Shown one piece after another: positions 9,712 through 51,626 of a stretch of DNA of 64,000 bases. The translations under genes were made by a program, and so were the position numbers. Below the pieces are notes generated by a model. That model saw only the letters and a list, made by a program, of their open reading frames with translations. It made no database searches and was not told the origin of the DNA. Within the stretch, counting starts at the first letter, position 1. Every line of letters begins with the position of its first letter. Source of the DNA: Epiperipatus broadwayi (taxonomy: Eukaryota; Animalia; Onychophora); contig JAQFVV010000005.1 of the NCBI GenBank assembly GCA_028023455.1, positions 11,284,001-11,348,000 on the forward strand, read 5' to 3'.

Positions 9712-9728
9712 CAGACAGACAGACAGAC

Positions 9729-9797
<69 letters not shown>
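9712..9797. repeat. (GACA)n(GATA)n compound microsatellite
   Basis: Directly visible tandem GACA followed by about 17 GATA units. Confidence 0.98.
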
Positions 9798-15445: not shown

Positions 15446-16048
15446 TAATATATAGGGTATATGAGCACAGACTTTCACATGACCCACCACTCTCCACACT
15501 ATCTCATAACACTGATACCCTTGAACACATATATGTTGAAAAGATAAATAATCTCCAATATACATATTTCATGCTAAACCAGCAATCATCAGTTGGTCCA
15601 GATTACCATCTCTACACATATATGCTATAAGTGCTCAGATATATATTAAGATAGCCGATCCTTATACTTTAATGGACAGGCTCCAATACACTCCACACTC
15701 CAACCGTCCATCCAATTGAAAATCTGATGGAATGCTCAAAGGCCACCCTGAGGCTGAGATTCTTGTCACACCCATGTTGACCTAAGGTCAATCTGACCCC
15801 TCATGTACAGGATATAATCCATTTAATACATATACAAGGGATGGGCAGACATCTCTTCTATGTAATAACTGAAACACACAGGCTTATTTTATACCTGTGT
15901 CTATATATGTAATATATAGGGTATATGAGCACAGACTTTCACATGATCCACCACTCTCCACACTATCTCATAACACTGATACACTTGAACACATATATGT
16001 TGAAAAGATAAATAATCACCAATATATGTATTTCATGCTAAACCAGCA
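15446..16048 (-). mobile_element. Family A HHR-bearing tandem repeat (retrozyme-like), 1.3 units of 464 bp
   Basis: TATAGGGTATATGAGCACAG at 15451 and 15915 (period 464). Homologous to 29305-30300 and 42667-43178. HHR on the minus strand. Confidence 0.85.
15545..15607 (-). ncRNA. Minimal type I hammerhead ribozyme motif A1
   Basis: Minus strand: GGUAAUC UGG ACCAA CUGAUGA UUGCU GGUUU AGCAU GAAA UAUGUA UA|UUGG AGAUUA. Core intact, stem II 4 bp plus U-U, stem III palindrome altered from UACGUA to UAUGUA. Confidence 0.75.
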
Positions 16049-16438
16049 GAATAAAAAAAGTAATGGGCAGAATAGTACTTTTATGCTATCCACTACACCT
16101 TTAAATACACTTGTAATAAAAGATGAAATATATTAAATAATGTTAGTATTAAAATAAAATAATGACTTGAATAAATAACTTTAATGTGACTTGAAAATAT
16201 ACTCATATTCAACAATTATTTATAGCTTTATTAATTAGGAATTTTTGGGTAAATTGGTGTGATCATGATGACAATAAAAACATAAATATATTTAAAGAAT
16301 AAAAAATATTTATTTATAATATATCACAAATTTAATATTATAATACAATAAAATAAAATAGTAAACAACAGACATTGCAGTATTAATTACTGCAGTCTTA
16401 AGCATTTAAAAAACCTAAATTAAAATATAACTCTAGTA

Positions 16439-17760
16439 CAGGGGTCAGCAACCTTTTAATAGTGTCGGGCTGAACCTATATTACAATGTTATTCTGCGGG
16501 CAGACACAATTTTATCAAACTTATTATATACTATCAAAATTGGTTGTTATAATGGGCTTCAAAGTTATATATATTATAGTATATAATATATACTTTTGAA
16601 ATCCATTATAACTGGATCTTATATTATTGGTCATTCGATATTTTAAAATACATAGAATCATATGTGAAAAGTACCTTTTGTTAAATTTGTAATTTTTAAC
16701 ATGCTTATTAAAAATTAAATTACAAATTATAAATAACTTTTTACTTATACAAAATATATAATTTAAATATAAAAAATTATTATGAATTCTAATATGATTA
16801 GTCATTTATTATTAAAATAAATTAATGTGAACATTGCCCTTGTACCTCTTTGCTCAATGTCAGATGTGTAATTGGTCCCTTTTAGTTTCACACATGCTTC
16901 TGAATGTTCAGGTGTTAGGAAACTTCTTTGTGAATTCAAAATATTTTTCATATGTGAGAAAATTTGTTCACCTAAGTAAGTTGAACCAAATGCTGAAAGC
17001 AGTTTTTTCAAAGAATTAAATCTTTCAGGTAATGATGTCCAACAATTGAGAATGACAGCAGACTTTTCTAGTTTTCCACAATTCTACAAATTTAGTTTTT
17101 CACTATTCTGATGACATTAATTCAATTAATTCCATTTCAAAACTATCAATATCCATCCATTCAAAAAGAGATAAATCAAATGGAGTCATCTTTAAATCAA
17201 TTAAGTCAGGTATTATTTAAAGAAAAAAAAAATATTGAAATTTTCTTCCTTCAGAATATCTCACCATTTTAGTCCTTGAATTTCTCTCATTTTCTTTTAG
17301 ATTTCTTTTCTTAATGATTTTAGTATTATTGCTAATCAAACAAGTGCTGAACAAAATTGTGCTTGTATTATCATTCCATTAAATAACATTTTTTGGCAAC
17401 TTATCTGCATAGTTCAGTTTCTGTCTTCCCTATCACAGCTTATAATAGTTATGAAGAACTGGGCAATATGCTTAGGATAGATACCAATGTGATAATCCTT
17501 TCCTTTTAGTTCTTGTCTGAAAAGTATCCTGATGTAATAAAGATATTTTTCATAACTTCCTTATGTGCTAGTTAATACAAATAATTGTGAATCAACGCAT
17601 TCTTTTCTAATTTAAAAGTTTTTAGTTAATTCTTCTCTCTTCTTCAACAACAGGGGAGAAGAACAAAAAAATTATCTCATTTGTATACTACCAGCTTCAT
17701 TTGCATACAATCCCCCTTTTATTTTATCTAGAACTTTTGGGACTGTCATCTAAATAAATT
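16439..17760 (-). mobile_element. hAT DNA transposon relic (Buster/SPIN-like), 3-prime end
   Basis: ORF 16802-17011 (LLSAFGSTYLGEQIFSHMK..QRSFLTPEH) is a hAT C-terminal dimerisation domain. Terminal CAGGGGTCAGCAACC at 16439 is preceded by CTCTAGTA, close to the nTCTAGAn target preference. Confidence 0.85.
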
Positions 17761-18759
17761 TCTAAAGTAATCTATTTTCATAAAAAGAATATTAATGAAG
17801 TAAATATATCCATGCATATTTACAAAATAAATAATCTTTACTTACATAATTTTATGTGTGAATATTTCACTCCTCCCTTGTTTCTTCCATCACGTATATG
17901 CATAAGTGGCACACACATTCTCAAAATATTGTCATGTAGTCTTTGCATTGGTAGGACAAATTACAATATATATGTACTATAACAGATTGTATATAATGTT
18001 TGCCATACTGTATACCTGCTATATACTTGTTATAGCATTTAGTTATCATACATCTCTTAAGGTAAGGAACTGCAGGTACCCTTCTAGATCTACCTAACAT
18101 TTTCAACTGAATGATGACAACTTGCCTCATATGGACGTATGATGACACTCCCAACGTTTCTGTGATAGCTTGCCTCATGTCTGATTTATGATCTATAAGT
18201 GTCAACTTGCCTCACTGATTTAAGTATATACTGGACAATGTGTATACTGCCATTTAGCACTGACAGTAATTTGTTGTCTCCCTTTATCTTCAAATGGACA
18301 TACTATTTATAGACAGATTTCCATCCTTAATGAAAGCAATTGGATTTACTGAACATCAACACCCATTGACTTGTTTCTCTTATTGGATATATCATCTGGT
18401 TTATACATATCTATCGGTCTATGGTGATGAATACTCAATCTGATCAAAATATGATGAAATCTGGACTAATCCATTAGTTAAAAGCAAGTTGAGATATAAC
18501 ATCGTCTCCCACTGTCAAAAGATAACCTTACTGAATGAAGTCATTCAGATGCTTTGCTGGATGTTTTCATTGCTTCCTGGCTTTCATAATCATTCTATGA
18601 CTTTATTTGAAAGATTTGGTGTGTTTATTTGTAAGTCTGGTCTCTTCTAGTTATTAAAACAGGCAAAAACTCACTGTATGTATTGCCACACTGCAAGCTA
18701 GAGTAATCAATGGATGCCAGAAGGCTTGTGTATAAAATCCCCATCTAGTGTCTATTCAT

Positions 18760-18814
18760 CCAATAATTCCAGACTAGTTTCTGGTTTGTGGCCTTCATCA
18801 GTGAGTAGCCTAGG
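18760..18814 (-). ncRNA. HHR motif B1 (core intact, stems partly eroded)
   Basis: Minus strand: CUACUCA CUGAUGA AGGC CACAA ACCA GAAA CUAGUC|UGGAAUUAUUGG. Confidence 0.6.
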
Positions 18815-19178
18815 ATCTGAGAGCACTGCACCTAGATCTTAGGATCTAAATGAAATGCTCAAGCAGCCACCTTTGATCTCTACTGAACTACAAAACTATG
18901 AGTCTTAAATATTTTCAATCCAAGCTCATCAGCTTATATAGTCATATAGGTCTGAACTCAGTTCAGTACCTATACATTTTGGTGTCTTTGGTTCTTTAAT
19001 AACCATAGCCACCACTATCCTATTAGGCAGGATTGGCCAATAAACATCACATGATCATCATTTCTTATGCTTGCTTATAACTGTTATTAAAACATGCAAA
19101 AACTCACTATACGTATTGCCGCATTGCAAGCTAGGGTAATCAATGGATGCCATAAGGCTTGTGCAGTACTCTCAGATA

Positions 19179-19232
19179 CAAGGCTCCTCAATGACGCAGG
19201 CCACAAGCAAGAAACTAGTCTGGGGCTATTGG
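19179..19232 (+). ncRNA. HHR motif B2 (core mutated, probably inactive)
   Basis: CUCCUCA AUGACGC AGGC CACAA GCAA GAAA CUAGUC|UGGGGCUAUUGG. Core positions C3 and A9 are changed. Confidence 0.55.
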
Positions 19233-19629
19233 ATGAGTAGGCACTAGATGAGGATTTTATGCACACGCCTACTGGTATTCATTGATTACTCTAGCTTGCA
19301 GTGTGGCAATATGTCTAGTGAGTTTTTGCCTGTTTTAATAAGTTATAAGCAAGCATAAGAAATGGTGATCATGTGATGTTTATTGGCTTAAAACCAATCT
19401 TGCCCAATAGGATAGTGGTGGCTATGGTTATTAAAGAACAAAAGATACCAAAATGCATGGGTACTGAACTGAGTTCAGACCTATATGACTGTATAAGCTG
19501 ATGAGCTGGGATTGAAAATATTAAGGTGTTTTCAATTTAAGACTCATAGTTTTGTAGTTAAGTAGAGATAAAATGTGGCTGCTGGAGGGTTGTATTATAT
19601 CCTTAGATCTATGTGCAGTGCTCTCAGAT

Positions 19630-19684
19630 CTAAGACTCCTCACTGATGAAGGTCACAAGCCAGAAACTAGTCTGGGAATATTGG
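19630..19684 (+). ncRNA. HHR motif B3
   Basis: CUCCUCA CUGAUGA AGGU CACAA GCCA GAAA CUAGUC|UGGGAAUAUUGG. Core intact, predicted cleavage after 19672. Confidence 0.75.
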
Positions 19685-20118
19685 ATGAGTAGGCACTAGA
19701 TGGGGATATTATGCACAAGCCTTCTGGCATCCAATGATTACTCTAGCTTGCAGTGTGGCAATACGTATAGTGAGTTTTTGTCTGTTTTAATAAGTTATAA
19801 GCAAGAATAAGAAATGGTGATAATGTGATGTCTCTTCTAGTTGTAGATGTAGTAAATTTGAACTTTGTGGAATCTTTACTGTTTGATGGTAAATCTTGAC
19901 TGTTCACTGGTGATCATAATTCTGTTTTAATTAGTTTTCTGTGTCAATAGTGTTCCTATCCATCTGCTGTTTGAATGACCACCGTTTGAAATATTTTTAA
20001 ATTGATCACAACTGCTGGAACCCATTTGGTGATTCTGCTATACAAGTAAGAGAACGTGGATGCCTACCTGCATTTTAGCACTTTTATTTTCATGAATATG
20101 TTAACTAAGCATATATAC

Positions 20119-20605
20119 CATGGGGTGTCCAGCAAGTCGATCGCAAAGCCAATTTTGGTCGATCATGAGGCCATTCTGGCAAGACCAGTCGGGTAACGAG
20201 TGAAAGAAATTAAGTCGAAAATCAAGTTTTTTTGTTATTTTTGTTTTTGTTCTAAATTTTTTTTCAATTCTAAATAGATGAAGTCCACTAAGTCGTATCA
20301 TTATTGAAAATAATATTTTTAATCTCGACTTAATGTAGCTAATTTGAATTAATAACTATTGTTAATAATTACTCATGTTGCTTTAATTCCCCCAGACGTG
20401 AGTTTTTTTGGCCAGTATGTATTTCACACCTCCCTCCACTTAGCCCGTTAAATAATTGTTATTTTTTACTAGGTACATATATATATAAATAGTACATAAT
20501 TCACACCTCCCTTCACTTAGACTATGCCTATGACAACAAGTCGATCACAACACATTTTAATTAAAAATAAAAAGATCTTATAAACATAAAAGTTGGCCAC
20601 CCCTG
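20119..20605. mobile_element. hAT-type MITE
   Basis: Ends CATGGGGTGTCCA.. and ..GTTGGCCACCCCTG. Near-TSD ATATATAC / ATATTATAC. No ORF. Confidence 0.65.
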
Positions 20606-22152: not shown

Positions 22153-22706
22153 TTGCTATAATGTTTTCCTGAAGGTTTGTGATGATAGTGTTTTAGTTGT
22201 ATTTATATGTTGGACTATTTCAATCAACTAATATGAGAATTCAATGTCTTTAGAAAAAATAACATTATTTAAATATTTCAAATACATTCAACTGTTAGTA
22301 ATAGCACACAGGTTAGTATATGAATAACGTTTTGAGAGGTATTACTCTCTCCTCTTCTTCAAGTACTGCTGGCCTGACCAATGACATTAGTAGCATGGGA
22401 TCAAGTGAGCCCTTGGCAGGATGGCTCAGTTGGTTAGAACATTACTTAAAATTCAATATTCAAGAATGGTTGGTGTCCAGGTTCGATTTCCATGCTAGTA
22501 CTGCTACTGGTCAGGCCAGCAACAACTGAAGAAAAGGAAAGAGTAATAACTTTCTAAACATTATGCATATACTAACCTGTGCGATATTACTAACAGTCGA
22601 ATGTATTTGAAATATTGAAATAAAGTTAAATTTTTCTAAAGACATTCAATACTCATATCACATGATGGAAATAGTCCAACATATAATACAACTTGCTATA
22701 ATGTTT
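22153..22706. mobile_element. Foldback insert made of a tRNA-derived SINE-like element and its inverted copy, 14-bp TSD
   Basis: TTGCTATAATGTTT at 22153-22166 and 22693-22706. A-box TGGCTCAGTTGG (about 22423) and B-box GGTTCGATTTCC (about 22479). Arms about 22190-22405 and 22480-22692 are reverse complements. Confidence 0.8.
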
Positions 22707-24337: not shown

Positions 24338-24585
24338 AATTTATATTTTTACAAATTGTAATCAGCAAGCTTACTCTTAAATTTTGAACATATGGTTATA
24401 GAAATTGGAAAAATATATGGTAATGGTCATTAACGGACTCTGTCCAATATTTACAACTATATGGTTAAAATTCAAGAATATACATTGGTTAAATTTATAT
24501 TTTTACAAATTGTAATCAGCAAGCTTACTCTTAAATTTTGAACATATGGTTATAGAAATTGGAAAAATATATGTTAATGGTCATT
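24338..24585. repeat. About 94-bp direct duplication, period 154
   Basis: AATTTATATTTTTACAAATTG...AATGGTCATT at 24338 and 24492, one mismatch seen. Confidence 0.9.
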
Positions 24586-26273: not shown

Positions 26274-27089
26274 TTATGAATCATGTATTTTTTTTTCAGC
26301 AAGATCTCGAATCCTCTTTAATAGCATTATCTCTTGGGAGCTGCATTCAGACTGTTGTTCACACCACGCCATTGTAGTTTCTAATGCAGTGAATGCCTCT
26401 GCATGAGTGGGTCCATTCATAACTTCCCTCTTTACTTTCTGAGTAGTCTGCATCTTAACAGTAACATGCTGATTGTCAGCAGTGAAGCCAGTAGAAAAAG
26501 ATGTATTCTGCAATGATTTTAAAGAGAATGAATTCCAGCTAAGCTCAGTTTCATCATCTTTGTAAATATCTTCCTTGGAAAAACTTTCATCCTCCAGTAC
26601 TTTCAGAAAAGACTTTTTAAAAGCTTCAGCTGCTAATAGATCATTTGTTAAAGCTTCTCCTTGAAGTTCAAACTTCCTTATGCCATGGCGAGATTTAAAA
26701 TTTTTCAGCCATCCTGTGCTGGCTTTAAATTCAGATGGGCCTTCAAGCTTTTGATTCAACTGTAATGCTTTTTTGCATAGCAGAGGTCCAGAAATGGGTT
26801 CTCCTTGACTTCTCTTTTGCAGAAACCATAAATAAACAGCATCTTCTAGTTTCTCATCACTAGCTTTTTTCATAGTTTTCCTTCTTTTAGAACCATCTTC
26901 ACTGTCTAATTGTGAAGCAAATTTCATAATTTCATTTTTTCTGCTCTTTATATCAGATATAGTTGCTTTTCCAATATTAAAAATCTTAGCAAGAGATGCA
27001 CCAGTTTCACCCTTCTCCAGTCTATTAATAATTGTCATCTTGTCTTTGATTGACAAAACATTGCGGCTTCTTTTGCCTGCAGATATCAT
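26274..27089 (-). CDS. Jerky/Tigger(pogo)-derived protein, 271 aa: CENP-B-type N-terminal HTH plus HTH_Tnp_Tc5, DDE domain deleted
   Basis: KRSRNVLSIKDKMTIINRLEKGE..GKATISDIK; LEDAVYLWFLQKRSQGEPISGPLLCKKA..FKASTGWLKNFKSRHGI; degenerate DETELSW; then a direct jump to C-terminal PTHAEAFTALE..LLKRIRDLAEKK. No stops, no TIRs seen. Confidence 0.8.
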   Translation of the reverse strand: MISAGKRSRNVLSIKDKMTIINRLEKGETGASLAKIFNIGKATISDIKSRKNEIMKFASQLDSEDGSKRRKTMKKASDEKLEDAVYLWFLQKRSQGEPISGPLLCKKALQLNQKLEGPSEFKASTGWLKNFKSRHGIRKFELQGEALTNDLLAAEAFKKSFLKVLEDESFSKEDIYKDDETELSWNSFSLKSLQNTSFSTGFTADNQHVTVKMQTTQKVKREVMNGPTHAEAFTALETTMAWCEQQSECSSQEIMLLKRIRDLAEKKIHDS

Positions 27090-27749
27090 TACTATACACA
27101 GATATGCTGCAGTTGTTATAATTTAAATCCTGTAATGATGAATTATATATTCGAATTTGATATAAATGCATCAAGTGGCAGAAGAAATACTCCAGCATAA
27201 CAATCACTACAATAAAAGTAGTTTGAGGAAGAAGACAAGACACAAGTAATTAAGACAATAGTTCTGGTTATTTCTGTTCAAATAATCGGCATTTCATGGC
27301 AATACACTCATAATGGACACATGGCTCACTATAATGATATCTTAAAACAAGAGTTGATTTTTTTTGATATGCTAAAATACAAAACCTATAAAAGAAAAAT
27401 AAGAATATTAACATAATTAATAAATAGACAAAATTGATTAATTAATTAATGAAAATTTTTTACATATTTTTTTGAAATTGCCTAAAAACTATTTTTACTG
27501 TGCTTACAATATTATTATAAATTATATTCCACTTTTTTCTCCAGCAATACCATTTATTAAATTGTTATAGTGGTGCAGTTAAGATCCAATATAAAATTAT
27601 TTTTGTTTATCATGATATAATACCTCCAGTCATCATTGTAGAAGTGATTCCAATGATATTTAAGTTATAACAATTCCAAATGCCAGTGTCATTTTCAAAG
27701 CAAATATTTTGATATTAAATAAATGTATTACTATTATTTATAAATATCA

Positions 27750-29300: not shown

Positions 29301-29444
29301 GACATAAGATTTGAAATAACAGGCACTCTTAAACTTGGAGCCTAATTGTAAATATACGAAATTTGAACTCAGGCTTTCAAGCCACTTCACTATCCACACT
29401 ATCTCATACTACTGATACACATAACCACACACATGCAGAAAAGA

Positions 29445-29502
29445 TAAATAATCACCAATATTTTCGTGCTAAACCAGCACTCACCAGTTGGTCCAAATTA
29501 CC
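29445..29502 (-). ncRNA. HHR motif A3 (defective)
   Basis: ACCAA CUGGUGA GUGCU GGUUU AGCAC GAAA AUAUUGGUG. Perfect 5-bp stem II, but A6 is changed to G and stem III is deleted. Confidence 0.6.
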
Positions 29503-29903
29503 ACCTCCCATACATATATATATAATCAGTGCTCAGTTTATATTAAGATGGCAAATCCTTACACTTTAATGGACAGGCTTCAACCTACTCCAACCTCCAA
29601 CTCTTAAGCCATCCATACCATTGATGATAGATTTCCCAAATCCCATGCTGATGCCAATATTGTTGTCATACCCATGGTGACCTCAAGTCACTCTGACCCC
29701 TCACATATAGGACAGTATCTATTTAAATACATAGAGGGATGGGCAAAATCCAGGCTTAACATGTAATATTTGAAATACCAGGCACTCTTAACTCTGAAGT
29801 CTAATTGTAAAGATAGGGGATTTGAACTCAGACTTTCAAGCCACTTCACTATCTGCACTATCTCATACTACTGATACCCATGACCATACACATGCAGAAA
29901 AGA

Positions 29904-29964
29904 TAAATAATCACCAATACACGTATTTCGTGCTAAATCACACTCATCAGTTGGTCCAGATTAC
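29904..29964 (-). ncRNA. Minimal type I HHR motif A4 (most canonical copy)
   Basis: GGUAAUC UGG ACCAA CUGAUGA GUGU GAUUUA GCAC GAAA UACGUG UA|UUGGU GAUUAUU. G10.1-C11.1 pair, GUA cleavage triplet, predicted cut between 29918 and 29917. Confidence 0.8.
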
Positions 29965-30799
29965 CATCTCCCATACATATATATATAATCAGTGCTCAGT
30001 TTATATTATGATAGCAAATCCTTATACTTTAATGGACAGAACTTCAATCTCCAATTCTTCAGCCATCCATACCATTGAAAATCTGATGATAGAATTTCCA
30101 AATCCAATACTGATGCCAATATTGTTGTCATACACATGTTGCCCTCAAGTCACACTGACCCCTCACGTATAGGACAGTATCCATTTAAATACAAAATACA
30201 TATATTGGTGATTATTTATCTTTTCTGTATGTGTTTGGTCATGTGTATCAGTAGTATGAGATAGTGTGGATAGTGAAGTGGCTTGAAAGTCTGTGTTCTG
30301 TGATATGTTCATGAATATGTATAGGAATACTATTTGTATTAAAATTCCTTCCATTTAATATGGTGTAAATCTAAACAGTTATTTATAGAAATATCAATCT
30401 ATTTCTCATGGAAAAAGTATCAAGTTCTCTATAAGTACTAATAAAAAATGTCATTTTTTTTCATTCAAAAATGGCTTGAAAAAATTCAGCAGGCCACAAA
30501 AAATGATAACTTCATTCTCATATACTTCAAATTAATATTTAATATTAGAATTGGAGCATTGTCATTTTGGATAGTAATAGTATTCTCTGGAAATAAAGTT
30601 CATATCATGGGATAAACATGATACCACAAAACAGTTAAATAACTCACATATATACCACAGAAAGGATATAGATGATCGTATGAAATAAATCTTATAAGTA
30701 ATGGAGAAAAAGCTGATGATTCATCTAACTACATGATATGCTTCCAATTATCTATCACTGGTTCTTATGCTTATAACATCGCTGTTTTTGTATCAAAGC

Positions 30800-32399: not shown

Positions 32400-32545
32400 A
32401 GTCTGGAAAAAAAGTTTGGAATATTTAAATAAAGTTAAATTTTTCTAAAGATTTTCGATACTCATATTAGATGATGAAAATAGTCCAGTATATAAATACA
32501 GTTAAAACATCATCATCACAAATCTTCAGAAAAACAATATCATTA
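32400..32545 (+). repeat. Fragment of the body of the SINE-like element at 22.2-22.7 kb
   Basis: AAATAAAGTTAAATTTTTCTAAAGA..ATACTCATAT..GAAAATAGTCC matches about 22615-22690. Confidence 0.7.
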
Positions 32546-34480: not shown

Positions 34481-34486
34481 ATTTGG

Positions 34487-34837
34487 ATACCCTATTTATC
34501 AAATTTAAGCGTAAACAGATATTATAATAACGTGAAAGCTAAACACCTTCAAACAGATATGCTTTAAACATGCTTACATGACAGCCGATCAGATGGAATA
34601 ATGACATCACATGGGAAATTCTAAAACACAAGCCAGAACTTTTTCTAATAATTCTGGCTTGTGTGTTAGAATTTAGAGTCCCATGTGATGTCATTATTCC
34701 ATCTGATTGGCTGTCACGTAAGCATGAAGTTCTGGCTTGTGTTTTAGAATTTACAGTCCCATGTGATGTCATTATTCCATCTGATTGGCTGTCACGTAAG
34801 CATGTTTAAAGCGTATCTGTTTGAATACCCTATTTAT
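34487..34837. mobile_element. Family D foldback insert with internal tandem duplication, 13-bp TSD
   Basis: ATACCCTATTTAT at 34487-34499 and 34825-34837. Arm about 34548-34648 is followed by one partial and one full reverse-complement copy. No HHR core found. Confidence 0.8.
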
Positions 34838-36477: not shown

Positions 36478-37557
36478 ATTTACTTGACAGTCAACTTTAA
36501 CGTTCCTGACAACAAATTATTTGTAGAATTAAAAAAACATTTTTGGTTTGAAAATTTATAGTTATATGAATATATCATTGAAATCTTACATTTATTTTGT
36601 GTCAGTGTTTTTATTTAAACTTGAAAACATAACAATGCACCTTTAATTTAATACATTTTTAATATTCGAAACAACATTGACTTTCTAAATAATAAATAGA
36701 AATCTAATTTTTTAAATAGCGAAATATAGATCAGATATATGAAATAATGCAATAATCTTACCTAAAATTTCCGGAAAACTTTAAAATAAATAAATATATT
36801 ATGAGTTGAAATAAATAACAATAACAAATATATTGGTTTTATTTAATCTCGTCCGTAATGCGAAATTCGCGACTTCTATCGGAAAAACCTAATTTAAAAT
36901 TTTTCTGTTGGTTTTATTCGAATAATACTGCCATAATTTGTTTTAGGAAACAAGTTCTAAATTCAATTCTATTTTTTGCACAGCATATATATTTTTATTG
37001 TGTAATTTAAGATTATCATCTTTTAAATATATTTGATTATTAGTATTGTATATGTAGTTAATTTGTTTATTGTATGATAATTGCGGAGAATAAAAAATAA
37101 CGTTTAATCATCTATTTTTGAAATTATCATGCAATTTTTTTAAAAATTAGTACTATGTTATTAAATGAATTATAATAGCTCATTAAAACAATATAAGCAA
37201 AAAATAAAATAAACGGGGTCTGGATCAATGTTTTCGTGGGGGGAAGGGGAAGCTCAAGGGGAGTTACAATGACTAAATATATATATATTTTATTTGCAAA
37301 TTCCCTCCGTTAAATTTTTTAATTTGAATGAGAATTCGCTAAAAAAACCAAAGCAACCAAGAAAATAAAATATAATTTATTGCATTATATGTATTTTAAG
37401 CCAATAAACATCACATGATCACCACTTCTTATGCTTATGTATAACTGTTGTTAACACAGGCAAAACTCACTATACGTATTGCCACACACAGCAAGCTAGA
37501 ATAATCAATGGATGCCAGAAGGCTTGTGCATAAAATCCCCATCTAGTGCCTACTCAT

Positions 37558-37612
37558 CCAATATCCCCAGACTAGTTTCTGGCTTGTGGCCTTCGTCAGT
37601 GAGGAGCCTTGG
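37558..37612 (-). ncRNA. Minimal type I HHR motif B4
   Basis: CCAA GGC UCCUCA CUGACGA AGGC CACAA GCCA GAAA CUAGUC|UGGGGA UA UUGG. Stem I is 6 bp plus an internal loop plus 4 bp. GUC triplet. Confidence 0.82.
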
Positions 37613-37946
37613 ATCTGAGAGCACTGCACCTAGATCTTAGGATCTAATGCAACCCTCCAGCAGCCACCTTTTATCTCCACTTAACTACAAAACTATGAGT
37701 CTTAAACTGAAAACATCTTAATGTTTTCAATCCAAGCCCATTAGCTTATATAGTCATATGAAACTAAAATGTATGGGTACTGAACTGAGTTCAGACCCAT
37801 ATGGCTATATAAGCTAATGGGCTTGGATTGAAAACATTAAGGGGGTTTTCAGTTTAAGACTCATAGTTTTGTACTTAAGTGGAGATAAAAGATGGCTGCT
37901 GGAGGATTGCATTACATCCTATGATCTAGGTGCAGTGCTCTCAGAT

Positions 37947-38001
37947 CCAAGGCTCTTCACTGACGAAGGCCACAAGCCAGAAACTAGTCTGGGGATATTG
38001 G
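37947..38001 (+). ncRNA. Minimal type I HHR motif B5
   Basis: CCAA GGC UCUUCA CUGACGA AGGC CACAA GCCA GAAA CUAGUC|UGGGGA UA UUGG. Predicted cleavage after 37989. Confidence 0.82.
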
Positions 38002-39652
38002 ATGAGTAGGGCCTAGATGGGGATTTTATGCACAAGCCTTCTGGCATCCATTGATTACTCTAGCTTGCTGTGTGTGGCAATACATATAGTGAGTTTTGCC
38101 TGTTTTAACAACAATTATATGTATTTTGTTTTATTTACTCCAAATTGCGTAAATTAATCTTTATAATATATAAATCATTATTATTTATTTATAAATATGA
38201 CTTTGTACAATTTTATTGAATCATATTTGAGAAAACAAAATAAAATATATATAATGCAATGTATATAAATATTATTTTCTTGAATGCTTTATTGCAAATC
38301 CATTATTGTCATCGTAATTTAATTTTTTTGCGAATTCTAATTCAGTAGATAAAATTGCTAACGAAGAGAATCATTCCTGACCAGAGTGATTTCACATTAA
38401 CTTAACCATAAAGTAAATGGCGAAATATTTAAATATACACATTGTAATTAGCCAAACAATCTAGCTACCACACAAACAGTGCTTTTTATAACTGTTTGCT
38501 TAGCATGTGACAGTCATTGCAGGTCAAATTACAGTTTTGGAAGAAAAATAGTTACATTTAGCAAGTGATAAAATATTTCCTTTTTTTGATTTTTGCAGAA
38601 AATATAAATCATACAAAGTGTGGAGCCTTGTGCGTTGCACTGTCCCCAAACTGGCTCTTGATATAAGCATTACAACTAATAAACCGTCTTCAAAGTAAAA
38701 GAGTTCAAGAGCCTTTGATTTTAATAAATTCATAATTTGAATATTTTAGTTTATCAAATGTCTTTATTGTTTGGGCATTCATAGGAAGTTCGAATGCCTG
38801 AATAATCAGAACTGGAATCGGGTGATCTAAGGATCTTATGCTTCTCAGTCTGTCACTTTACTACTACTGCACTATGATGTGAAATAAAATATGAACTCAT
38901 AAATTATTATTATTTAGGCTTATTGGTCAAAAGATAATATTGTTTTGGCAGGAAAAAGTATTGGCCAAAATGAGTTCATTAATAGTGTCCGGTACTTACG
39001 CATTAGATCTGCAATATAGTAGACCTAATATTTCTTTTCACATTTGTATCAATGCTCTTGTGATCTGACCAAATAACATGTACACTTGGATCTTGACCAA
39101 ACTAAAAAAGATAAATTCATCAAAATAGACCACATGTACATGATATTTTTGCAAGATTTACAAAGTTATCAGCAGTCTGAATATGCATGTAAAAAGATGT
39201 AGCAGTTCTAATACATGACAGTAATTGCACCAGACTAAATCTAACAATATTAAAAATATGAATTTCACATTTTATTTTAATTGGATAAATTTTTGTTTCA
39301 AAATGGAGACTAAAAGTAAAAAAAAATGTTTTCCCCAAAATGGAGACTTAGTTAACATGTGATTGTGCAATATAATGCCTGCATAGGATCTTCACCAGAA
39401 ATGTTAATAAGTAGTATTTCAGAACCCAAAAAAAAAAGAAATTTAAATTATTACCCTTTTATTATTTCTTCAATAAGGTGGACCAATTTTTTAATGTCCA
39501 GTATGATTCACATGAAAATGATCAGGACTAATAAGTACCATGTTTTTTCCATAATGAATATATCTCCATTATTTTTGTTAGATTTGAATATTCAAATTAC
39601 ATGTGATATAATGTCTTACTGCTGATGATGTATTATTCTAAGTTTGCAATAA

Positions 39653-39738
39653 GTTTAAAATAATGCCTCCATGGGATCTGCATACAAATTTTATTGATTA
39701 ACTTTGTCCGCACCTTCCTTGGAGGCATTATTTTAAAC
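39653..39738. mobile_element. Tiny MITE-like element with perfect 19-bp terminal inverted repeats
   Basis: GTTTAAAATAATGCCTCCA ... TGGAGGCATTATTTTAAAC. Confidence 0.65.
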
Positions 39739-40957
39739 ATATCACAAAATTAGAGTAATGCATCATAGCAGGAATAATACCAAAGTACCAAAGAAATTTC
39801 TTTCACATTCGTCATACCTAGAATATCTTAATAAATTTTAAATCTATACATATTTTAAATTGAATGATTAAGATTGATTTAATAAATAACCCTGAGATAA
39901 ATAATTAATTGAATATTATATTTAAGTTAGGAATGAGAGAGAGTGATTTTCTAGCCTTATTCAAATTACATATTAATTTGTATCAAAGTAGTTTTTTACA
40001 CAAAAGATTTTTTATCAAATTATATGTGTTTAAGAAAGATTATTGAGATACATCTATAAGAAGATCCTGAGAAATTTATTGGTCTTAAATTTTAATGTAT
40101 TATTAAATTCTGGAATAGTTATTATTATTTATTTTATGTGGCAAATAAATATGCATTCATTTTAATTTACTTTTGTAAATTTGCGACCAATTGTAAACAT
40201 CTCCATTTAAAATGATCTCATCACAACTGGTCATCTTTTGCTCCTATTTGATTATAACTTGAATTTGGGTTACAATATATATGGGAAAATCAATTGGCTA
40301 CATTCTTCCACATATACAACTTTAGTTTGTCTACTTTATTTTTTATATTATTAATTAACCTGTTCAAATTTGTAGGTGATGTAAGACAATATTGAATTTA
40401 TCTGCAGTATTCCAAATTTATTTTCAATGCTCAATACATAGGTCATTTATTTATTTATTTTTCTAACTTTTCTACTTTCAGTCATAATATTTCTTTTAAA
40501 ATGCTCAAAATATTTATATTGTAATGGTAGAAAACTGAGAGAGGCTTTGTTGTGTGCCTAAACTTTGGACACCAAATCTGCAACAGAAGAAAAATGAACA
40601 AGAACAAGAAACTCCATTGATATGCTTTAGCTCTGAATTCCAAAATTATAATGGTATAATAATGATAACATGAGAATTCTCCTTCTTAATACCCGAAGTC
40701 TTTGAGCATTCTAAATCTGTAACAGGACAAAATGAGAAAAGGTTAATTGATCTAGTTATTCTAATAAAGATATGTATGAATACTAAAAATGGAAAAAAAT
40801 GATTATATGGATTGTTTACTTTTATACATTTATGAATTATATAAAGTTACAATCTATAATAGTATTAATTATATAATACCAAATCTGTAATAATGTGAAT
40901 AGGCTAGCTAAAATTAATAGAGCTATATAAGTTAAGTGAACAAAATCTAAAATGGAA

Positions 40958-41097
40958 TAAGATGAGCAAATGTTGTATAATGAGCTTGAAAATAAGCTCT
41001 TAACAAGCTTTGCAGAATATTCTCAACAATGGACCGGTTTCTACTACTGACTTCCTCAGTGAGGTGCCAGGATATTCAAGCATTAAGATGAGCAAAT
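40958..41097 (-). mobile_element. Family C minimal insert (112 bp, essentially one HHR motif), 14-bp TSD
   Basis: TAAGATGAGCAAAT at 40958-40971 and 41084-41097. Minus strand GAAUAUCCUGGCACCUCA CUGAGGA AGUCAGUAGUA GAAA CCGGUC|CAUUGUUGAGAAUAUUC. Core intact, stem II and proximal stem I eroded. Confidence 0.75.
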
Positions 41098-42649
41098 ATT
41101 AAGCAAGCTCTATTAATAAAATAATCCAAAACCTATATTGGAATAATGTTTAATATTTATTAATAATATTTACATATTAAATAAATTTCAACTCTATTGG
41201 ATGCTAATATTGTCTACACAATATAAAATAATGTATTTGAAAATTATGATGTATATTAATTAATAGTTTATAATATCCATTCATAAATAACACTTTTATT
41301 GCTATGTGGTAAGTTTATACTATATTCAAGAATGAATAAAGTTATTAAGCTTAATGATTATATAAAATTTTATTATTATAATTTATTGACTAGTTTTTAT
41401 TCCAATGGATGTTCATGAAACAGACTCACTTTTCATCACTACTGAACTTGAGCACAGTGATAAAATTTATATTATTTGCTAGTTAGATTTTATGTTTAAA
41501 TCTATTAATTTGAATGACTCAACTAATAATAATTTTATTTACAAAAACTAATAACAAGACAACAAATATGTCATAATAATTTAAATTAATGTACCATAGA
41601 ATATTATATCTCATTAACTCAGTGCCTGCAGTGTGCCATGAGAGATTTAAGGTATGCCTTGAAAGATTCCAAAATATAGATAAATAACATGTAAAGACAT
41701 CATGGACTGTTCAACTGTGAGTCATCCTGTGGTAATTTAGGGAAAGAAAGATCCGAGCACATTTGCAAAGTTTGAGCATGTTCTGGAATAATACCATGTC
41801 GAGTATTTATATTAGCAGTGGACAGAATAAGGCAGCAATCATCTTGGTAAAATGCATACTGTGGTTAAAATAAATTGAAAGATTTGTTATATAAATATTA
41901 GTAATCGTGATTAGTTAGGAATTGGTTAGTTTAAAATAGTTGCAATTGTAAATATAGCACAAAATACTTTAAATATAAATTACTTACATTACACAAAGAA
42001 CAGCAGTTTTGCTACAATAAATTATATTTCTGCATTAATAAAGTTAAACTGGGATTGTCTGTAAGTAAATTATTTAGTAGCCATAGTAGTTTTTAGTTCA
42101 TGATTTATTTATAATTTACATAAATTATTTTATGTTAATTTGAATCAATTTTCAGTAAAGAAAATATTTTAAACATGGACAAATTTTTATTGAGATCTCA
42201 GAAAAATGAGGCAGAGTGTCATAACAAACAAAATAAATACCAGAATAAAAAGTCCACCCCATCAAAACAAAAATATAATGAAAATTACATATAATATGGT
42301 TTTATATTATCAAAATAATATAACTTTGTTCCTTTTGTATCATTTTTAACAACACTGAAATGATGCGATAGTTCCCATAAAACTTTAACACCATTTAATA
42401 AAAAATCATCTGCAACATAAGGACAAACTAAAAGAATACATTCAGATGCTAAAAAAATAATTTAAAAATTCAATCATAAGAAATTTCACTCAATTCCCAA
42501 AAAAGCTCAAATTGCTACTTACAGATTTTCTTATTTTTTTCAATCTCTTTATTCTAATTTAATCTTGATTTCTTATTTCATTCATCAAACATATCAATAA
42601 TGACCCATAGTGCATGTAAAAAAGCATCATCCACATAATGTACATATGT

Positions 42650-43196
42650 ACAATTTTATATTAATCTAATATATAGGGTATATGAGCACAGACTTTCACA
42701 CCAACCACCACTCTCCACTCAATCTCATAACACTGATACACCCGAACATATATATGTCGAAAAGATAAATAATCACCAATATACGTATTTCATGCTAAAC
42801 CAGCAATCATCAGTTGGTCCAGATTACCATCTCCACACATATGCTACAAGTGCTCAGATATATATTAAGATAGCCAATCTTCATACTTTAATGGACCAGC
42901 TTCAATCTACTCCTCACTCCAACTGTCCATCCAATTGAAAATCTGATGATGGAATGCTCAAAGGCCCCCCTGAGGCCGAAATTTTTGTCACATCCATATT
43001 GACCTAAGGTCAATCTGACCCCTCATGTACAGGACATAATACACCCAATACATATACAAGGGATGGGCAGACATCTCTACTATGTAATAACTGAAACACA
43101 GGCTTATTATATTCCTGTGTCTATATATGTAATATATAGGGTATATGAGCACAGACTTTCACACCAACCACCACTCTCACAATGTTTATATTACTC
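42650..43196 (-). mobile_element. Family A HHR-bearing tandem repeat, 1.1 units of 463 bp, degenerate TSD of about 17 bp
   Basis: TATAGGGTATATGAGCAC at 42672 and 43135. Flanks ACAATTTTATATTAATC and ACAATGTTTATATTACTC. Confidence 0.85.
42766..42828 (-). ncRNA. Minimal type I HHR motif A5
   Basis: GGUAAUC UGG ACCAA CUGAUGA UUGCU GGUUU AGCAU GAAA UACGUA UA|UUGGU GAUUAUU. Perfect palindromic stem III AUACGUAU, predicted cut between 42780 and 42779. Confidence 0.82.
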
Positions 43197-44749: not shown

Positions 44750-45350
44750 TTCCTTGGTAGTCCCAGGACAGTTGTAAATTTTATATTTTTTTCATGTTAG
44801 TTTTCTTTTTGTAGGCTTCTCCATTAACAACCACTTGCAGGCTAATGAATACAGTTAAGTTTCTCCATTCAGACTTCTACACAGAAAGAATTTATCTTTT
44901 TCTTTCTAATAATTTTCTAGTCAGATTAATATAAAAAAACAGAAACACTCATGCTCTTGGATTGAGACAAAGCTTGTTAGATTATTTTAGGAATACTCTT
45001 TCATTTAATACTTTTTATTGTGAAGTCTGTAATGAATGTTGATTATCTTTAGTTTCTAGATAAATTTGGCACATAGTTTTCTTTATTTTAGAAAACTTTT
45101 AAAGCTAATCTGCATTCTCCTAAAGCTGAATCAAGAATGACTTTCTACCATCCTCTTCAACAGCTGGATCAAGACTAATAAATGCTGCCACTGCTCTCCT
45201 CAACAATTTGATCAATATCACCTGTTCTTCACAAAACATTGACAGCTACACATTTATCCTTTTCTCTATGGCATACTTTTGTAATAATTTTGTCTCCAAC
45301 TAATCACAATCTTGTCTCCTACATAACCATATTAAACACTTGCAAATTGC
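44750..45350 (-). mobile_element. Possible LINE ORF1 (esterase-like) relic
   Basis: Fragments VGDK.. and CQCF..GDIDQIVEE loosely resemble GDS..CFPGAxIxDI of CR1-type ORF1. Heavily decayed. Confidence 0.25.
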
Positions 45351-47696: not shown

Positions 47697-48650
47697 CATC
47701 ATCATCATTACTGTGATTCCAGCATGTTCCACAGTGGATTGCATGATTTCTCAGAGCTGTGGCTATTAACTAGCATATGTTTGTAAAAAGCATATATTTG
47801 TGTTGAGTTACAAACACAAATTAAATGGATCAATAAAAAAAATGTAACTACTTATTAGGAATGAATAAATAAAACAGTTGCATATTGCAACTATTAACAC
47901 ATACATAAAATACTAATCATAGTAGTAAAAAATATTTTATATTTATGTCCAAGTTTAATACTTAATAGTATTTATAATGATAAGATCTTACCATGTTAAA
48001 TATTTAACAGTCACAAAACATGGTTTTTCAGATACCATTCTTTTAATATTTTGTTTTCTTCCATAGTTCTGTTGACAATGATGGTAGTTCTTGAATACTG
48101 GTGATGTTAGAGTAATTACAGTATCCCTAGTGATGTTATATGAGGAATAATATCAGGTCTTGGATAATTTATACTGCACTGTCCATTTATTCTTTTAGAA
48201 GCATTGCACAAGTTGGTTTTGCAAACTTTAGCATCAATTTCTGGATCTGATTACATTTTCCAGGCATTTGGCTGGTGTGGTTTTTGGTTATTTAGGCACA
48301 CATGATGGTTAGATTTCTTCTAAATAAAATCATCATACTGACTTGTAACTGGAGTATTGATAAATATTTTATAAACAGGAAAATACAGTATTGTGAAAAA
48401 AGTTTTAATCAGTGGTTGTTTCTCTCTTCAGTATCATGGCAATACATTTTCAATAGATTGCACTCTTTTAGAATAAAAATGATAATAATAATGCACAGTT
48501 GCTTGTTTCCAAACTATTTATATTTACTTGATGTTGTTCAAATGATATGGTTTTCAAACAACATATACATCAGCTAGGCAACATGTAACCTTTGCATCAT
48601 TACAACAATATATTTTTTGAAAAACTATTCATTTTCTTCATAACATGTTG
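47697..48650 (-). mobile_element. Possible RTE LINE 3-prime end relic
   Basis: RTTIIVNRTMEE resembles the RTE C-terminal KTIxQGTMEG. Ends in an ATGATGATG-like tail at about 47697-47710. Confidence 0.35.
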
Positions 48651-49640
48651 TGGATATAAATTTTATGTACATTATATCATAATTTTGTATGCAAATAAGT
48701 GAAATAAAAGATTTTTTTTTCTTTTCTCTCCTCTTTCTTTTATATATTGCGACATAGGGGGAAGGAAAATTCATTACCAACCTTTAACTTTTTAATTATA
48801 ACTTCTAAAATATTATTTATAAAATTTGAATTTAAATCCTCCATTAAATTTGCTATAAAAATATTAGAGACTTTACCCAAAACTAGATTTATGATAAGCC
48901 AACTAATATATTTGAAAATGCTTTGGATTTCTATAAATTACACATTCAAAATTCTTTCACTCATCAAAGCATTTTTCCTTCTTTCTTTACAGCAATTTCT
49001 CATTATTATTTTTCATATATTACAAAGGGGATTCTTAATAGACTTTAATAATATGCATAAATTAATTTTTCTCTCAATTTTTAGCAGTTTACATTTTTAT
49101 TTCTCAAGTCATACATTCATATGTGTACACACTCAAATGGCATTTTGTTTATTTATTAGTCAGTTTACATCAGTATTTATTAAACAATTTTTTTTTTATC
49201 TTTCTGCAGCATTGTGGTATAGTCAATTTGCACTCTTCACATGTTTTATAGCTACAATATATAGAATCATTTTAAAAAAGAAAAACATAATTTAATATAT
49301 AATTTTATTCAGAAGAATCCTGTGATGCAAATATCATGCATTTGTCCTACAGACCAAGTTTGAAATTGATATGGTTAAAAAAAATTTTCAGGATTTAGTC
49401 AGTCTTTGGATTTTATTTTAGGTTTCTGGACCAAGCCCAATTCTGTTAATCATCCTATCATCAGTAAATATATATCTTAACTTTTCTTAATACAGAATAA
49501 AATAAACTTGAAAAGTATTTAAACTCTCACCACCATCGAATACATGGAAAATCTAGTGAATAATGTTTCAATGTTCTTCAAAGCCATGAAACATTATATT
49601 TAAGATAAAGTCCTCCACTAGAAAAGTTAGACAATTATAT

Positions 49641-49888
49641 CTTAGAATTAATGTTGTAATTATAAATTTATTTAATGCACATTGATTACATAAGTAATAT
49701 TTACCAAGGCAATAAACCTAAAGCATGTGCGGTTGAAAATGCGAAGGTAGAGACCTATACAATTCTTAACCACAAGCTTTTCCAATGTGTAAGCTTGTGG
49801 TTAAGAACTGTAGAGGTCCCTACCTTCGCATTTTCAACCGCACATGCTTTAGATTTATTGTCTTGGTAAATATTACTTAGAGTTAATG
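49641..49888. mobile_element. Foldback insert with about 95-bp arms and a probable 13-bp TSD (1 mismatch)
   Basis: Arms about 49690-49789 and 49792-49879 are reverse complements. CTTAGAATTAATG at 49641 and CTTAGAGTTAATG at 49876. Confidence 0.7.
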
Positions 49889-50973
49889 ATAATATTTTTA
49901 ACAATGTGCAAAAATCTTTAGTTCATCAATTGAAGGATTTTTATTAGATTTGTTCCTAAAAGTGCTATTTTTTTTTTATAATTTTATTTAAAATGTTGAA
50001 ATATTATTGTTTAATTTGCCTGATCATATGTAATGTTTTTTTTATAATCAAATTTTGTATAAAAATATTCTGGAAATGTAAGTACTTGTGGTAAATCTCT
50101 TAACAAAAATATGTAAAATATTAGCAATTTGTGACTAAATTCATAAAAAGATGAAATGAAGCTAATATAGGTATATTATAATCACTCATTGAAATTATAG
50201 TAAGACAGTTATTCATTTAATTACGTATTTTTTAATAATTACATAAAATAAATATTTCTATATGTCAAATTCTATACAAGAAGTTCAAACTCTATATTTT
50301 TTTTGCAAGTTTATCATAATTTTTACTTTAATGCAATTTATTTAATTTCTGGGACCTGCTACTGGTATAATTTTTTTTCTGCATTCACAGATAGGAAATT
50401 AATTATGTTATTAGATGCTAAAAAAACATATTTAGGATTCCGTTTGTCCATGCAGTTATATAGATTTACAATGACTTTGTGCATTGATAAAATAAATTTT
50501 GGTATATTGCTATATTATGCCTTACAGTAAATTATTCAGGTAATTAGTTAATAGAACTTATATCCATCATCAAAAATTCAATGTAGAATAATTCATTACT
50601 TATTAGTTTCAAGAATTAATATTTCGTTGATGATTGACATTCTTTCTAATAAATCCTATGGAGTGAAGTATGTAAAGTGATTTACTTTGTCTATTAAATA
50701 TTTTATTTTTCAAGAGCCATTAAGGGTTATCTACATATACTTGTAACTTTCCTATTACATGATCATGAGATATGATGCAATGATTTTTATGGGTGAAAAT
50801 GATCCACCCAAGAATTTGATCATGAGAACTTTAAGCCATTGTTTTTGCAGATGTTTTCAAATGAACCTTTATAATGGATTATTTTATGAGTTTTCTTACT
50901 ATATCATAGAATAGAAACGCATTCATTCTTAAACAGGTTATTCAACTTTCTAATTTTTTTTTTTTTCTCATGG

Positions 50974-51062
50974 GTCATAGCATCAGCCGGGAAGCGAACC
51001 TGCTAACCTGGAACAACTGCTTGTAAAACAGCTGTCGCTGACCTCTTGACCACCAATGATTG
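50974..51062 (-). mobile_element. tRNA-derived SINE-like head
   Basis: Minus strand TGGTGGTCAAGAGG (A-box-like) and GGTTCGCTTCCCGGCTGATGCTATGAC (B-box). Homologous to 56527-56621. Confidence 0.65.
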
Positions 51063-51149
51063 ACAACTTTCTATTTTAAAGACTTTGATATATGTTTTGA
51101 CATTAACAGATTCAAACCAAAAGCAACATGGTGATGTGATATTATCTTT

Positions 51150-51626
51150 ATAGTTATATATAGAGCTTGCAAAACAAGCTCTTAACAAGCTTGTTTTGCG
51201 AGCTCTATATGTAACATTTGTAAATACAAGCTTTATTAAAATTAAGTCATGTGACATCTGGCTTGATTTTTTATCATTTTATTTTTTGCTATTAAGGCTT
51301 TGGCGATTTTATATTGCTAAAGCTATTAATATATGGTGTATCTGAACTTAGTTCAGTCCTATGTGGCTATTTGAGTTAGATAGCTGGATTTTTAGACATA
51401 AATGTTTGAAAATTTCAGATTTTCTTCTCAATAGTTATACATTAGATAAAATGCTGGGCTTGTCCTAGTATTTTTGATCTAATGATATCCTGGCATCTCA
51501 CTGACAATGCCAGAAGCAGAAACCGGTCTGGGGTTGAGGATATTCTCAAAGCTTGTTTTGTGAGCTCTATATATAACATTTATAAATACGAGCTTTATTA
51601 AAATTGTCATGTGACATCTGACTTGA
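51150..51626 (+). mobile_element. Family C HHR-bearing tandem repeat (about 362-bp unit, 1.2-1.3 copies) with a short 5-prime inversion
   Basis: AAGCTTGTTTTG.GAGCTC at 51187 and 51549. Shares CTGAACT.AGTTCAG and TCATGTGA with family B. Hairpin at about 51155-51210. Confidence 0.75.
51484..51545 (+). ncRNA. HHR motif C1 (G8 changed to A, probably inactive)
   Basis: GAUAUCCU GGC AUCUCA CUGACAA UGC CAGAA GCA GAAA CCGGUC|UGGGGU UG AGGAUAUU. All three stems pair. Confidence 0.75.

Follow-up and report, generated by a model that had tools for sequence, protein, structure and literature searches.

Background

Animal retrozymes without long terminal repeats (non-LTR retrozymes) are short, non-coding repeats of low GC content that carry type I hammerhead ribozymes and occur in genomes as monomers, dimers and multimers (PMC7229834; 10.64898/2026.07.22.740005). 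They have been proposed, and lately argued on phylogenetic grounds, to be non-autonomous derivatives of Penelope-like elements (PLEs); the existing evidence for this link consists of co-occurrence and phylogeny. Here we analyse hammerhead-bearing repeats in 64,000 nucleotides of the genome of the onychophoran Epiperipatus broadwayi (assembly GCA_028023455.1, contig JAQFVV010000005.1, positions 11,284,001 to 11,348,000 of the forward strand). This whole stretch is referred to as the window and positions are counted from its first nucleotide. We suggest that the repeats are probably relics left by the insertion of short non-coding, non-autonomous elements of PLE type (362-464 nt) with one type I hammerhead per unit. 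They would fall into two lineages, one formed by the two subfamilies of family A and the other by families B and C.

The hallmarks of PLEs are frequent 5' truncation, partial tandems known as pseudo-LTRs, a tail of 30-40 bp at one end and AT-rich targets. Next to the 5' end stands an inverted 5'-truncated copy, in most cases head-to-head with a junction palindrome (PMC8557442, PMC3846280, PMC11167929). The one-sided tail is explained by two internal initiation sites of the reverse transcriptase (RT), one of them in an AC-rich stem-loop. PLE hammerheads are located in the pseudo-LTR, and some have been described as opposite-strand pairs spaced by 100-700 bp. Pseudo-LTRs suffice for mobilisation in trans, and solo pseudo-LTRs are known. 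In the published model of hammerhead dimers, self-complementarity of loop III is a requirement of the dimeric helix III.

Repeat families and their units

An earlier reading of the letters without database searches (the sequence-only reading) had described three repeat families with units of about 464/459, 452 and 362 nt. Direct-repeat and self-BLAST analysis returns the same three unit sizes at the same coordinates, and we call the families A, B and C (Table 1). They are three by unit size only. No similarity between A and B/C is detected by blastn, while B and C units share 64% identity over 266 nt; judged by this similarity, the families are two independent lineages, not three. Family A consists of two subfamilies, A1/A3 and A2, which are about 75% identical. 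Its hammerhead-bearing units lie on the minus strand only, and family B occupies both strands in head-to-head inverted copies. These orientations, like the shorter inverted pieces at A2 and C2, go beyond what had been described. With 28% GC the window is AT-rich and resembles animal DNA; GC content of the units is 0.32-0.42.

The individual loci carry 1.1-1.9 units. Head-to-tail junctions are present in A1, A2, A3, B1 and C2, and one of the two ribozymes is always truncated or mutated. No locus keeps two intact ribozymes on the same strand, hence none should be able to release unit-length RNA or make a circle alone. For this reason the loci are, as their ribozymes tell, fossils, i.e. products of the system and not its sources. 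Copies that were identical at insertion are now 4-17% divergent, which indicates that those in the window are old. The proposal of a retrozyme-like system stands in so far as these are hammerhead retroelements, but the loci are dispersed, decayed insertions of one to two units and not tandem arrays.

One may ask whether the repeats were transposed at all. They could instead be hammerhead-bearing tandem DNA of satellite type, which unequal crossing-over amplified and of which fragments are left here. The unit sizes (362-464 nt) resemble newt and axolotl repeats, and so does the palindromic tetraloop on a one-base-pair helix III. Nevertheless, no locus exceeds two units, because of which Tandem Repeats Finder (TRF) reports no tandem array with A-C unit periods in the window. 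The loci are scattered over 36 kb, have unrelated flanks and show target-site duplications. Further, head-to-head inverted copies are unexpected from unequal crossing-over. We leave the satellite explanation scarcely any probability.

Hammerhead motifs

Candidate sites were listed by locating every CUGANGA and every GAAA followed by a palindrome on both strands. Twelve sites homologous to hammerheads were obtained across the three families, two of them 5'-truncated (A1b and the inverted copy at 30194); both had been noticed before as partial copies and are real. The sequence-only reading had counted at least 10 motifs. Ten untruncated homologous sites exist, but only eight keep CUGANGA and six pass a complete descriptor. 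The core CUGANGA...GAAA...UH is intact at A1, A2b, A3, B1a, B1c, B2a, B2b and C1, with helix I decayed at B1a and C1. Three sites (A2a, B1b, C2) have dead cores; in C2 the change of G8 to A lets us presume an inactive hammerhead.

The type I descriptor required helix I of at least 4 bp, CUGANGA, free positions 10.1/11.1 followed by at least 3 bp, GAAA, a self-complementary loop of 4 or 6 nt, and UH. It is matched completely at six sites (A1, A2b, A3, B1c, B2a, B2b), while 300 shuffles of the window that preserve dinucleotides give no match; the motif is thereby enriched over shuffled sequence. All six satisfy type I topology, that is, three helices with helix I open. A stricter scan that demands canonical 10.1-11.1 pairing finds one site only.

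Helix I measures 5-6 bp, helix II 4-5 bp, and helix III is a single base pair with a palindromic loop. The stems I proposed earlier (ACCAA/UUGGU in A, UCCUCA/UGGGGA in B, AUCUCA/UGGGGU in C) were all located in the sequence, and the stem III palindromes UACGUA, CUAG and CCGG are all present. All three families have a self-complementary loop III, and the replacement of CUAG (B) by CCGG (C) keeps this property. Since the one-base-pair helix III is capped by a self-complementary loop, the hammerheads would probably work best in dimeric form. At 5-6 bp from the core, helix I is interrupted by a 3-nt bulge, which reads UGG in A and GGC in the other two families; past it, helix I runs into a closing stem that is wholly different in sequence between B (AUCCAA/UUGGAU, as in B2a) and C (AUAUCCU/AGGAUAU). 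Loop 2 has 5 nt. Individual copies show some decay. Loop III of A1 (UAUGUA) is CpG-decayed with self-pairing kept via G.U, and helix I of this copy has 4 bp because its fifth pair is lost. The loop UACGUG of A2b is CpG-decayed yet self-pairing, and helix I of B1c consists of 4 contiguous bp, a mismatch and 1 bp more.

That the stems keep pairing across families, as the sequence-only reading had it, is borne out by the B/C alignment, in which 79.8% of cells pair versus 25-43% with slid partners. Three pairs are changed on both sides (AU/CG, AU/UA, UA/AU), and a covariation score this high arises in 2 of 500 shuffles. Each covarying pair represents one B-to-C event, so the weight of this result is modest. 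Across the three families, helices I and II either covary or are preserved; MAFFT failed to align A with B/C in register and the cross-family pairs were counted by eye. A covariance model built from B and C found again the B/C sites only and no family A site, because primary sequence dominates the model.

Two further lines of evidence come from conservation and folding. Between the subfamilies of A, conservation is highest in the block formed by the hammerhead and extended helix I (71/81 identical positions versus 214/316 elsewhere, Fisher P=2.8e-4). For unit-length A and B RNAs, permuted to the predicted cleavage site, the predicted folds exceed those of shuffles in stability (z -2.7 and -2.3), and the two ends pair. 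When short hammerhead domains are cofolded, dimers are favoured by 5-14 kcal/mol; the minimum-energy structures are not cleanly a textbook double hammerhead.

These results bear on the simplest doubt, namely that CUGANGA...GAAA arose by coincidence in AT-rich repeats and was never a ribozyme. Such doubt could be fed by the missing Rfam call and by several copies with broken cores. On the other side are the six descriptor sites that no shuffle reproduces, the same architecture in two dissimilar lineages, the compensatory changes between B and C, the self-complementary loop III in three families, and conservation that peaks at the motif. By shuffles and covariation, chance resemblance is effectively refuted. 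The hammerhead reading is supported by the core in two unrelated lineages, B/C covariation, self-complementarity of loop III and enrichment over shuffles, all of which concern predicted ribozymes.

Insertion architecture

Locus B1 is bounded by a perfect target-site duplication of 13 bp (18640-18652 and 19830-19842) and B2 by a perfect one of 14 bp (37384-37397 and 38114-38127). Of 2000 random window pairs, about one (0.05%) attains such a length in each case (P<=0.0005). A3 is flanked by a duplication of about 14-15 bp that contains one indel (42650-42663 and 43179-43193; 9 nt exact, P about 0.03). The flanks of A1 contain an imperfect 11-bp A-rich match (9/11), a doubtful candidate for a duplication.

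The copies have common 3' ends and variable 5' truncation, and their partial tandems repeat a fixed head-to-tail junction in independent loci. In A1 and A3, unit junction and 3' end are identical, flanks are unrelated, and the upstream partial copies are 139 and 49 nt long. The identical junction and 3' end define a 464-nt element and would rule out random truncation of a longer one. Family B copies stop at one of two (possibly three) 3' sites. An extra 3' tail is found at the right end of B1 only (about 37-40 nt) and at the left arm of B2 only (about 48 nt), and the short 3' end sits inside an AACAACA stretch. Both B loci contain inverted 5'-truncated copies head-to-head, and another such copy abuts the A2 tandem at its 5' end; the 5' junction of C2 has a 27-nt inverted duplication only, without 3' terminus. 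Insertion targets are AT-rich.

We thus see 5' truncation, partial tandems, an adjacent inverted 5'-truncated copy, a one-sided tail and an AT-rich target, i.e. the features by which PLE insertions are told. Our analysis supports the view that the architecture points specifically to PLE machinery. The retroelement nature of the repeats, already suggested by the sequence-only reading, is supported by the 13- and 14-bp duplications, the common 3' ends, the fixed junctions and the lack of detected coding capacity.

There are two other ways to explain these insertions. Firstly, the repeats may be 5'-truncated 3' ends (pseudo-LTR regions) of autonomous PLEs of 3-4 kb, whose coding parts are absent from the copies. 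PLE insertions are heavily 5'-truncated, their hammerheads reside in the pseudo-LTR and solo pseudo-LTRs are known, so that all features of the architecture seen here would be equally typical of autonomous PLEs. Random 5' truncation of a long element, however, would not repeat one junction. Such repetition is what we find: the independent loci A1 and A3 share the head-to-tail junction of the 464-nt unit, the 452-nt junction of B1 recurs in both orientations, and C2 contains a 362-nt unit. Moreover, no RT, endonuclease (RVT, GIY-YIG) or other element-encoded domain is detected in the 75 stop-free frames of at least 65 codons in the whole window, which makes the elements at most non-autonomous. 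We consider truncated autonomous PLEs an unlikely source.

Secondly, family B (and C) could be a DNA transposon of foldback type or a miniature inverted-repeat transposable element (MITE), moved by cut-and-paste, with the hammerhead-like sequence incidental in its arms. B2 is indeed a near-perfect palindrome of 716 bp bounded by a target-site duplication, its arms being 96% complementary over 275 nt, and a pogo/Tc5 transposase fragment as well as several further hairpin repeats occur in the window. But the ends of B1 and B2 are unequal, with the one-sided tail of 40-50 nt, and B1 has head-to-tail partial tandems besides the inversion. The 3' ends are common while the 5' ends differ, and a 100-nt fragment (61513-61612) contains the 3' part only. 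The non-palindromic family A shows the same size class of duplication and the same partial-tandem form. Duplications of 13-14 bp are also long for pogo or MITE elements. Cut-and-paste mobility therefore seems to us very unlikely.

Our preferred reading, PLE-type retroelements without own proteins, leaves two observations on coding to be mentioned. Every family A copy contains stop-free frames of 72-124 codons antisense to the hammerhead. They have no Pfam match and no consistent excess of third-position substitutions, hence they are probably not coding and were rejected as genes. Origin from short interspersed nuclear elements was likewise rejected, as the elements have no tRNA-like sequence or head; no tRNA genes were found in the window.

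Possible life cycle and its weak points

The life cycle that we propose is taken from the published retrozyme/PLE model; the genomic outcomes alone are observed, and cleavage, circles and partner enzyme are inferred. Starting with head-to-tail master copies, transcription would give multimeric RNA. Hammerheads would then cut after UA (A) or UC (B, C), and a host RNA ligase might close the unit-length RNAs into circles. An autonomous PLE elsewhere in the genome would supply its RT/GIY-YIG endonuclease in trans. Finally, this enzyme would copy the RNA into an AT-rich target by target-primed reverse transcription, with initiation at either of two internal positions close to the 3' end.

Several observations weigh against such a reading, and most of them concern the hammerheads. 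Position 10.1-11.1 is U.U in A1/A3, A.A in B and C1, and U-A in C2, with G-C only in the A2 subfamily. Since most copies lack G-C there, their activity may be weak. The axolotl retrozyme hammerhead HHR_Amex2, which has U.U at the base of helix II, does cleave, reportedly well only as a dimer. A search with the Rfam Hammerhead_1 model, by which the sequence-only reading wanted its proposal checked, failed to make a call. Rfam gives no hammerhead at gathering score in the whole window or at E<=10 in the 39 kb between 14 and 53 kb. On a 111-nt stretch, Hammerhead_1 (RF00163) scores A2b at 15.1 bits versus the gathering threshold of 34; A2b is the sole site it aligns, with the full-length model and in correct register. 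A search with 561 nt of B2 finds no hammerhead and Hammerhead_1 is blank on B and C.

The remaining points concern the insertions. The flanks of A2 and C2 are without a clear target-site duplication, and those found are 13-15 bp long versus 8-10 bp in rotifer PLEs. Tails of about 40-50 nt somewhat exceed the published 30-40 bp. The loci have one to two units at most, whereas published non-LTR retrozymes were defined on tandem arrays. There is no autonomous PLE in the window, and it is solely the insertion architecture that suggests a partner.

The search with B2 returned only spurious plant microRNA (MIR) families, on account of the palindrome. Its centre (37645-37914) matches MIR7533, MIR7723 and MIR8742 with E-values down to 1e-23, all far below gathering scores, and shows how long inverted copies of a retroelement mimic miRNA hairpins. 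Automated annotation would overlook such elements, as Rfam scores stay far below threshold and palindromes draw spurious plant microRNA matches. The window is thus a useful example of hammerhead retroelements hidden in AT-rich animal DNA.

If the reading is true, hammerhead families exist whose consensus lacks G10.1-C11.1 (A.A, U.U), which would suggest cleavage by obligate dimers or assisted by protein. Further, the window presents a complete signature of PLE integration on units below 500 nt in two unrelated lineages, including two alternative 3' termini 40-50 nt apart. Should genome-wide copies and intact tandem masters be confirmed, this would amount to direct structural evidence that PLE RT/endonuclease integrates animal retrozymes via internal initiation; for the present we hold this stronger claim to be rather doubtful. 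More modestly, the architecture adds small independent support, structural and not phylogenetic, for animal retrozymes as non-autonomous PLEs. The copies are decayed and established knowledge of hammerheads and retrozymes is unaltered.

Other features of the window

Some neighbouring sequences deserve mention. A perfect (100%) tandem duplication with a 115-bp unit lies at 14862-15091, about 350 bp left of locus A1. An (AGAT)21 microsatellite is found at 9713-9797, and a 94-nt segment occurs in two copies, 99% identical and spaced by 154 bp, at 24338-24585. A MITE-like repeat of about 480 bp (22203-22686) has inverted arms of 56 and 145 nt, and an 88% identical piece of 81 nt at 32415-32495. 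The region 34548-34825 combines a complex hairpin with a 78-bp tandem duplication (97%); its sub-threshold MIR5070 match is probably a hairpin artefact. Near-perfect hairpins at 39625-39766 and 49691-49879 (arms of 70 and 89 nt, loops of 2 and 11 nt) are possibly MITE or foldback fragments.

The sole Pfam matches in the window are DNA-binding domains of pogo/Tc5 transposases in an unrelated fragment (26277-27122). The open reading frame (ORF) at 26274-27089 on the minus strand, 271 codons long, comprises Tc5 transposase helix-turn-helix and CENP-B N-terminal domains. It is an N-terminal fragment of a pogo/Tigger (jerky-like) DNA transposase, with relatives 45-63% identical, the named ones from arthropods. 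Another ORF of 318 codons (58232-59188, plus strand) has a strong purine skew, no Pfam match and no similarity to A, B or C. Its single distant relative carries zf-RVT, which suggests that it is probably the C-terminal part of ORF2 of a long interspersed nuclear element.

Relatives of the elements were sought in metagenomes and viral contigs. An exact 22-mer of family B has no match in metagenomes, and two scans of viral contigs gave no relatives. A degenerate B/C pattern finds only unrelated hammerheads on seven metagenome contigs, five of them marine or aquatic. The hammerheads of these five (contig GC 36-41%) are canonical type I with CCCCA / CUGAUGA / GCCU..AGGC / GAAA / CCGG / UC / UGGGG.

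Table 1. Positions of repeat families, loci, predicted hammerheads and related features (metagenome hits are given in coordinates of their own contigs)
Feature	Position	Strand	Description
Family A	A1 15446-16048, A2 29305-30298, A3 42667-43178		unit spacing 464 and 459-463 nt
Locus A1	15446..16048	-	full 464-nt unit (15909..15446), preceded by 139-nt 5'-truncated copy (16048..15910)
Hammerhead A1	15555..15596	-	CUGAUGA; helix II base U.U; loop III UAUGUA; predicted cleavage site UA
Hammerhead remnant A1b	16005..16048	-	5'-truncated within helix II; no CUGAUGA; loop III UACAUA
Locus A2	29305..30193	-	two units of A2 subfamily, spacing 459-463 nt, about 75% identical to A1/A3
Hammerhead A2a	29454..29492	-	dead: core CUGGUGA (A6 to G), loop III deleted; 10.1-11.1 G-C
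Hammerhead A2b	29913..29955	-	complete: ACCAA/UUGGU, CUGAUGA, G-C at 10.1-11.1, loop UACGUG; predicted site UA
Inverted family A copy	30194..30298	+	5'-truncated, head-to-head against 5' end of A2; starts within hammerhead GAAA
Locus A3	42667..43178	-	full 463-nt unit preceded by 49-nt 5'-truncated copy
Hammerhead A3	42775..42818	-	complete: ACCAA/UUGGU, CUGAUGA, helix II U.U + 4 bp, palindromic loop UACGUA; predicted site UA
Antisense open frames, family A	15412-15627, 15873-16133, 29333-29566, 29798-30169, 42639-42935	+	probably not coding
Family B	B1 18653-19829, B2 37398-38113		unit 452 nt; plus 3' fragment 61513-61612
Locus B1	18653..19829		nested palindrome: [full unit, minus][5'-truncated, minus] facing [5'-truncated, plus][full unit, plus]
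Hammerhead B1a	18766..18807	-	CUGAUGA core intact, helix I decayed to 3 bp
Hammerhead B1b	19185..19226	+	dead: core AUGACGC (C3 and A9 changed)
Hammerhead B1c	19637..19678	+	core intact, loop CUAG; predicted cleavage site UC
Locus B2	37398..38113		two 5'-truncated family B copies, head-to-head
Hammerhead B2a	37564..37605	-	complete: UCCUCA/UGGGGA, CUGACGA, helix II A.A + GGC/GCC, loop CUAG; predicted site UC
Hammerhead B2b	37954..37995	+	complete; mirror of B2a on opposite strand, 361 nt apart
Family B-like 3'-terminal fragment	61513..61612	-	74% identical; no hammerhead
Family C	C2 51157-51626		unit 362 nt; plus fragment C1 40972-41075
Fragment C1	40972..41075	-	hammerhead remnant 41026-41065: CUGAGGA core and CCGG loop kept, helices I and II decayed
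Locus C2	51157..51626	+	inverted piece 51157-51183, 78-nt 5'-truncated copy 51187-51264, full 362-nt unit 51265-51626
Hammerhead C2	51495..51534	+	helices intact: AUCUCA/UGGGGU; helix II U-A, G-C, C-G; loop CCGG; core CUGACAA
Metagenome hammerheads, marine/aquatic contigs	L002:192-227, L004:842-877, L005:60-95, L006:882-917, L007:2081-2116		flanks unrelated to window elements; no long ORF nearby

Comparison with known systems

The elements fit animal non-LTR retrozymes, a kind already published, and by this comparison of sequences the find is genuine but ordinary. The likeness includes short non-coding units with one type I hammerhead each (published consensus 51-972 bp), GC content of 32-42%, target-site duplications longer than 4 bp, and the lack of LTRs, a primer binding site (PBS) and a polypurine tract (PPT). 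Two details recur in axolotl retrozymes: U.U at the helix II base of A1/A3 in HHR_Amex2, and the one-base-pair helix III with palindromic tetraloop in HHR_Amex1. The window differs from described animal non-LTR retrozymes in its loci of 1.1-1.9 units without an intact same-strand ribozyme pair, in prominent head-to-head inversions, in the 6-nt palindromic loop III of A and in A.A at 10.1-11.1 in B.

With PLEs (PMC4209133, PMC8557442, PMC3846280, PMC11167929) the elements share the type I hammerhead with small palindromic helix III, 5' truncation, partial tandems, the head-to-head inverted 5'-truncated copy, the tail at one end and AT-rich targets. The opposite-strand pair of B2, 361 nt apart, lies within the published 100-700 bp. 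Unlike autonomous PLEs, however, they have no RT/GIY-YIG ORF and their unit is under 500 nt. Their helices (I 5-6 bp, II 4-5 bp) resemble canonical metazoan and amphibian hammerheads and not the min-HHR of PLEs, in which helix II has 7-8 bp.

Newt satellite 2 and related amphibian repeats (units about 330-350 nt) have in common with them a hammerhead whose very weak helix III needs dimerisation. Those repeats form very long arrays of huge copy number, whereas the copies in the window lie scattered, with target-site duplications at their borders and some of them inverted. Plant LTR retrozymes (PMC4918200) are also non-autonomous retroelements with hammerhead-processed RNA, possibly to circles. 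They differ in their type III hammerheads within true LTRs, PBS, PPT, 4-bp duplications, high GC content and Gypsy-type mobilisation. The Rfam family Hammerhead_1 (RF00163) has the same topology and core as the elements described here.

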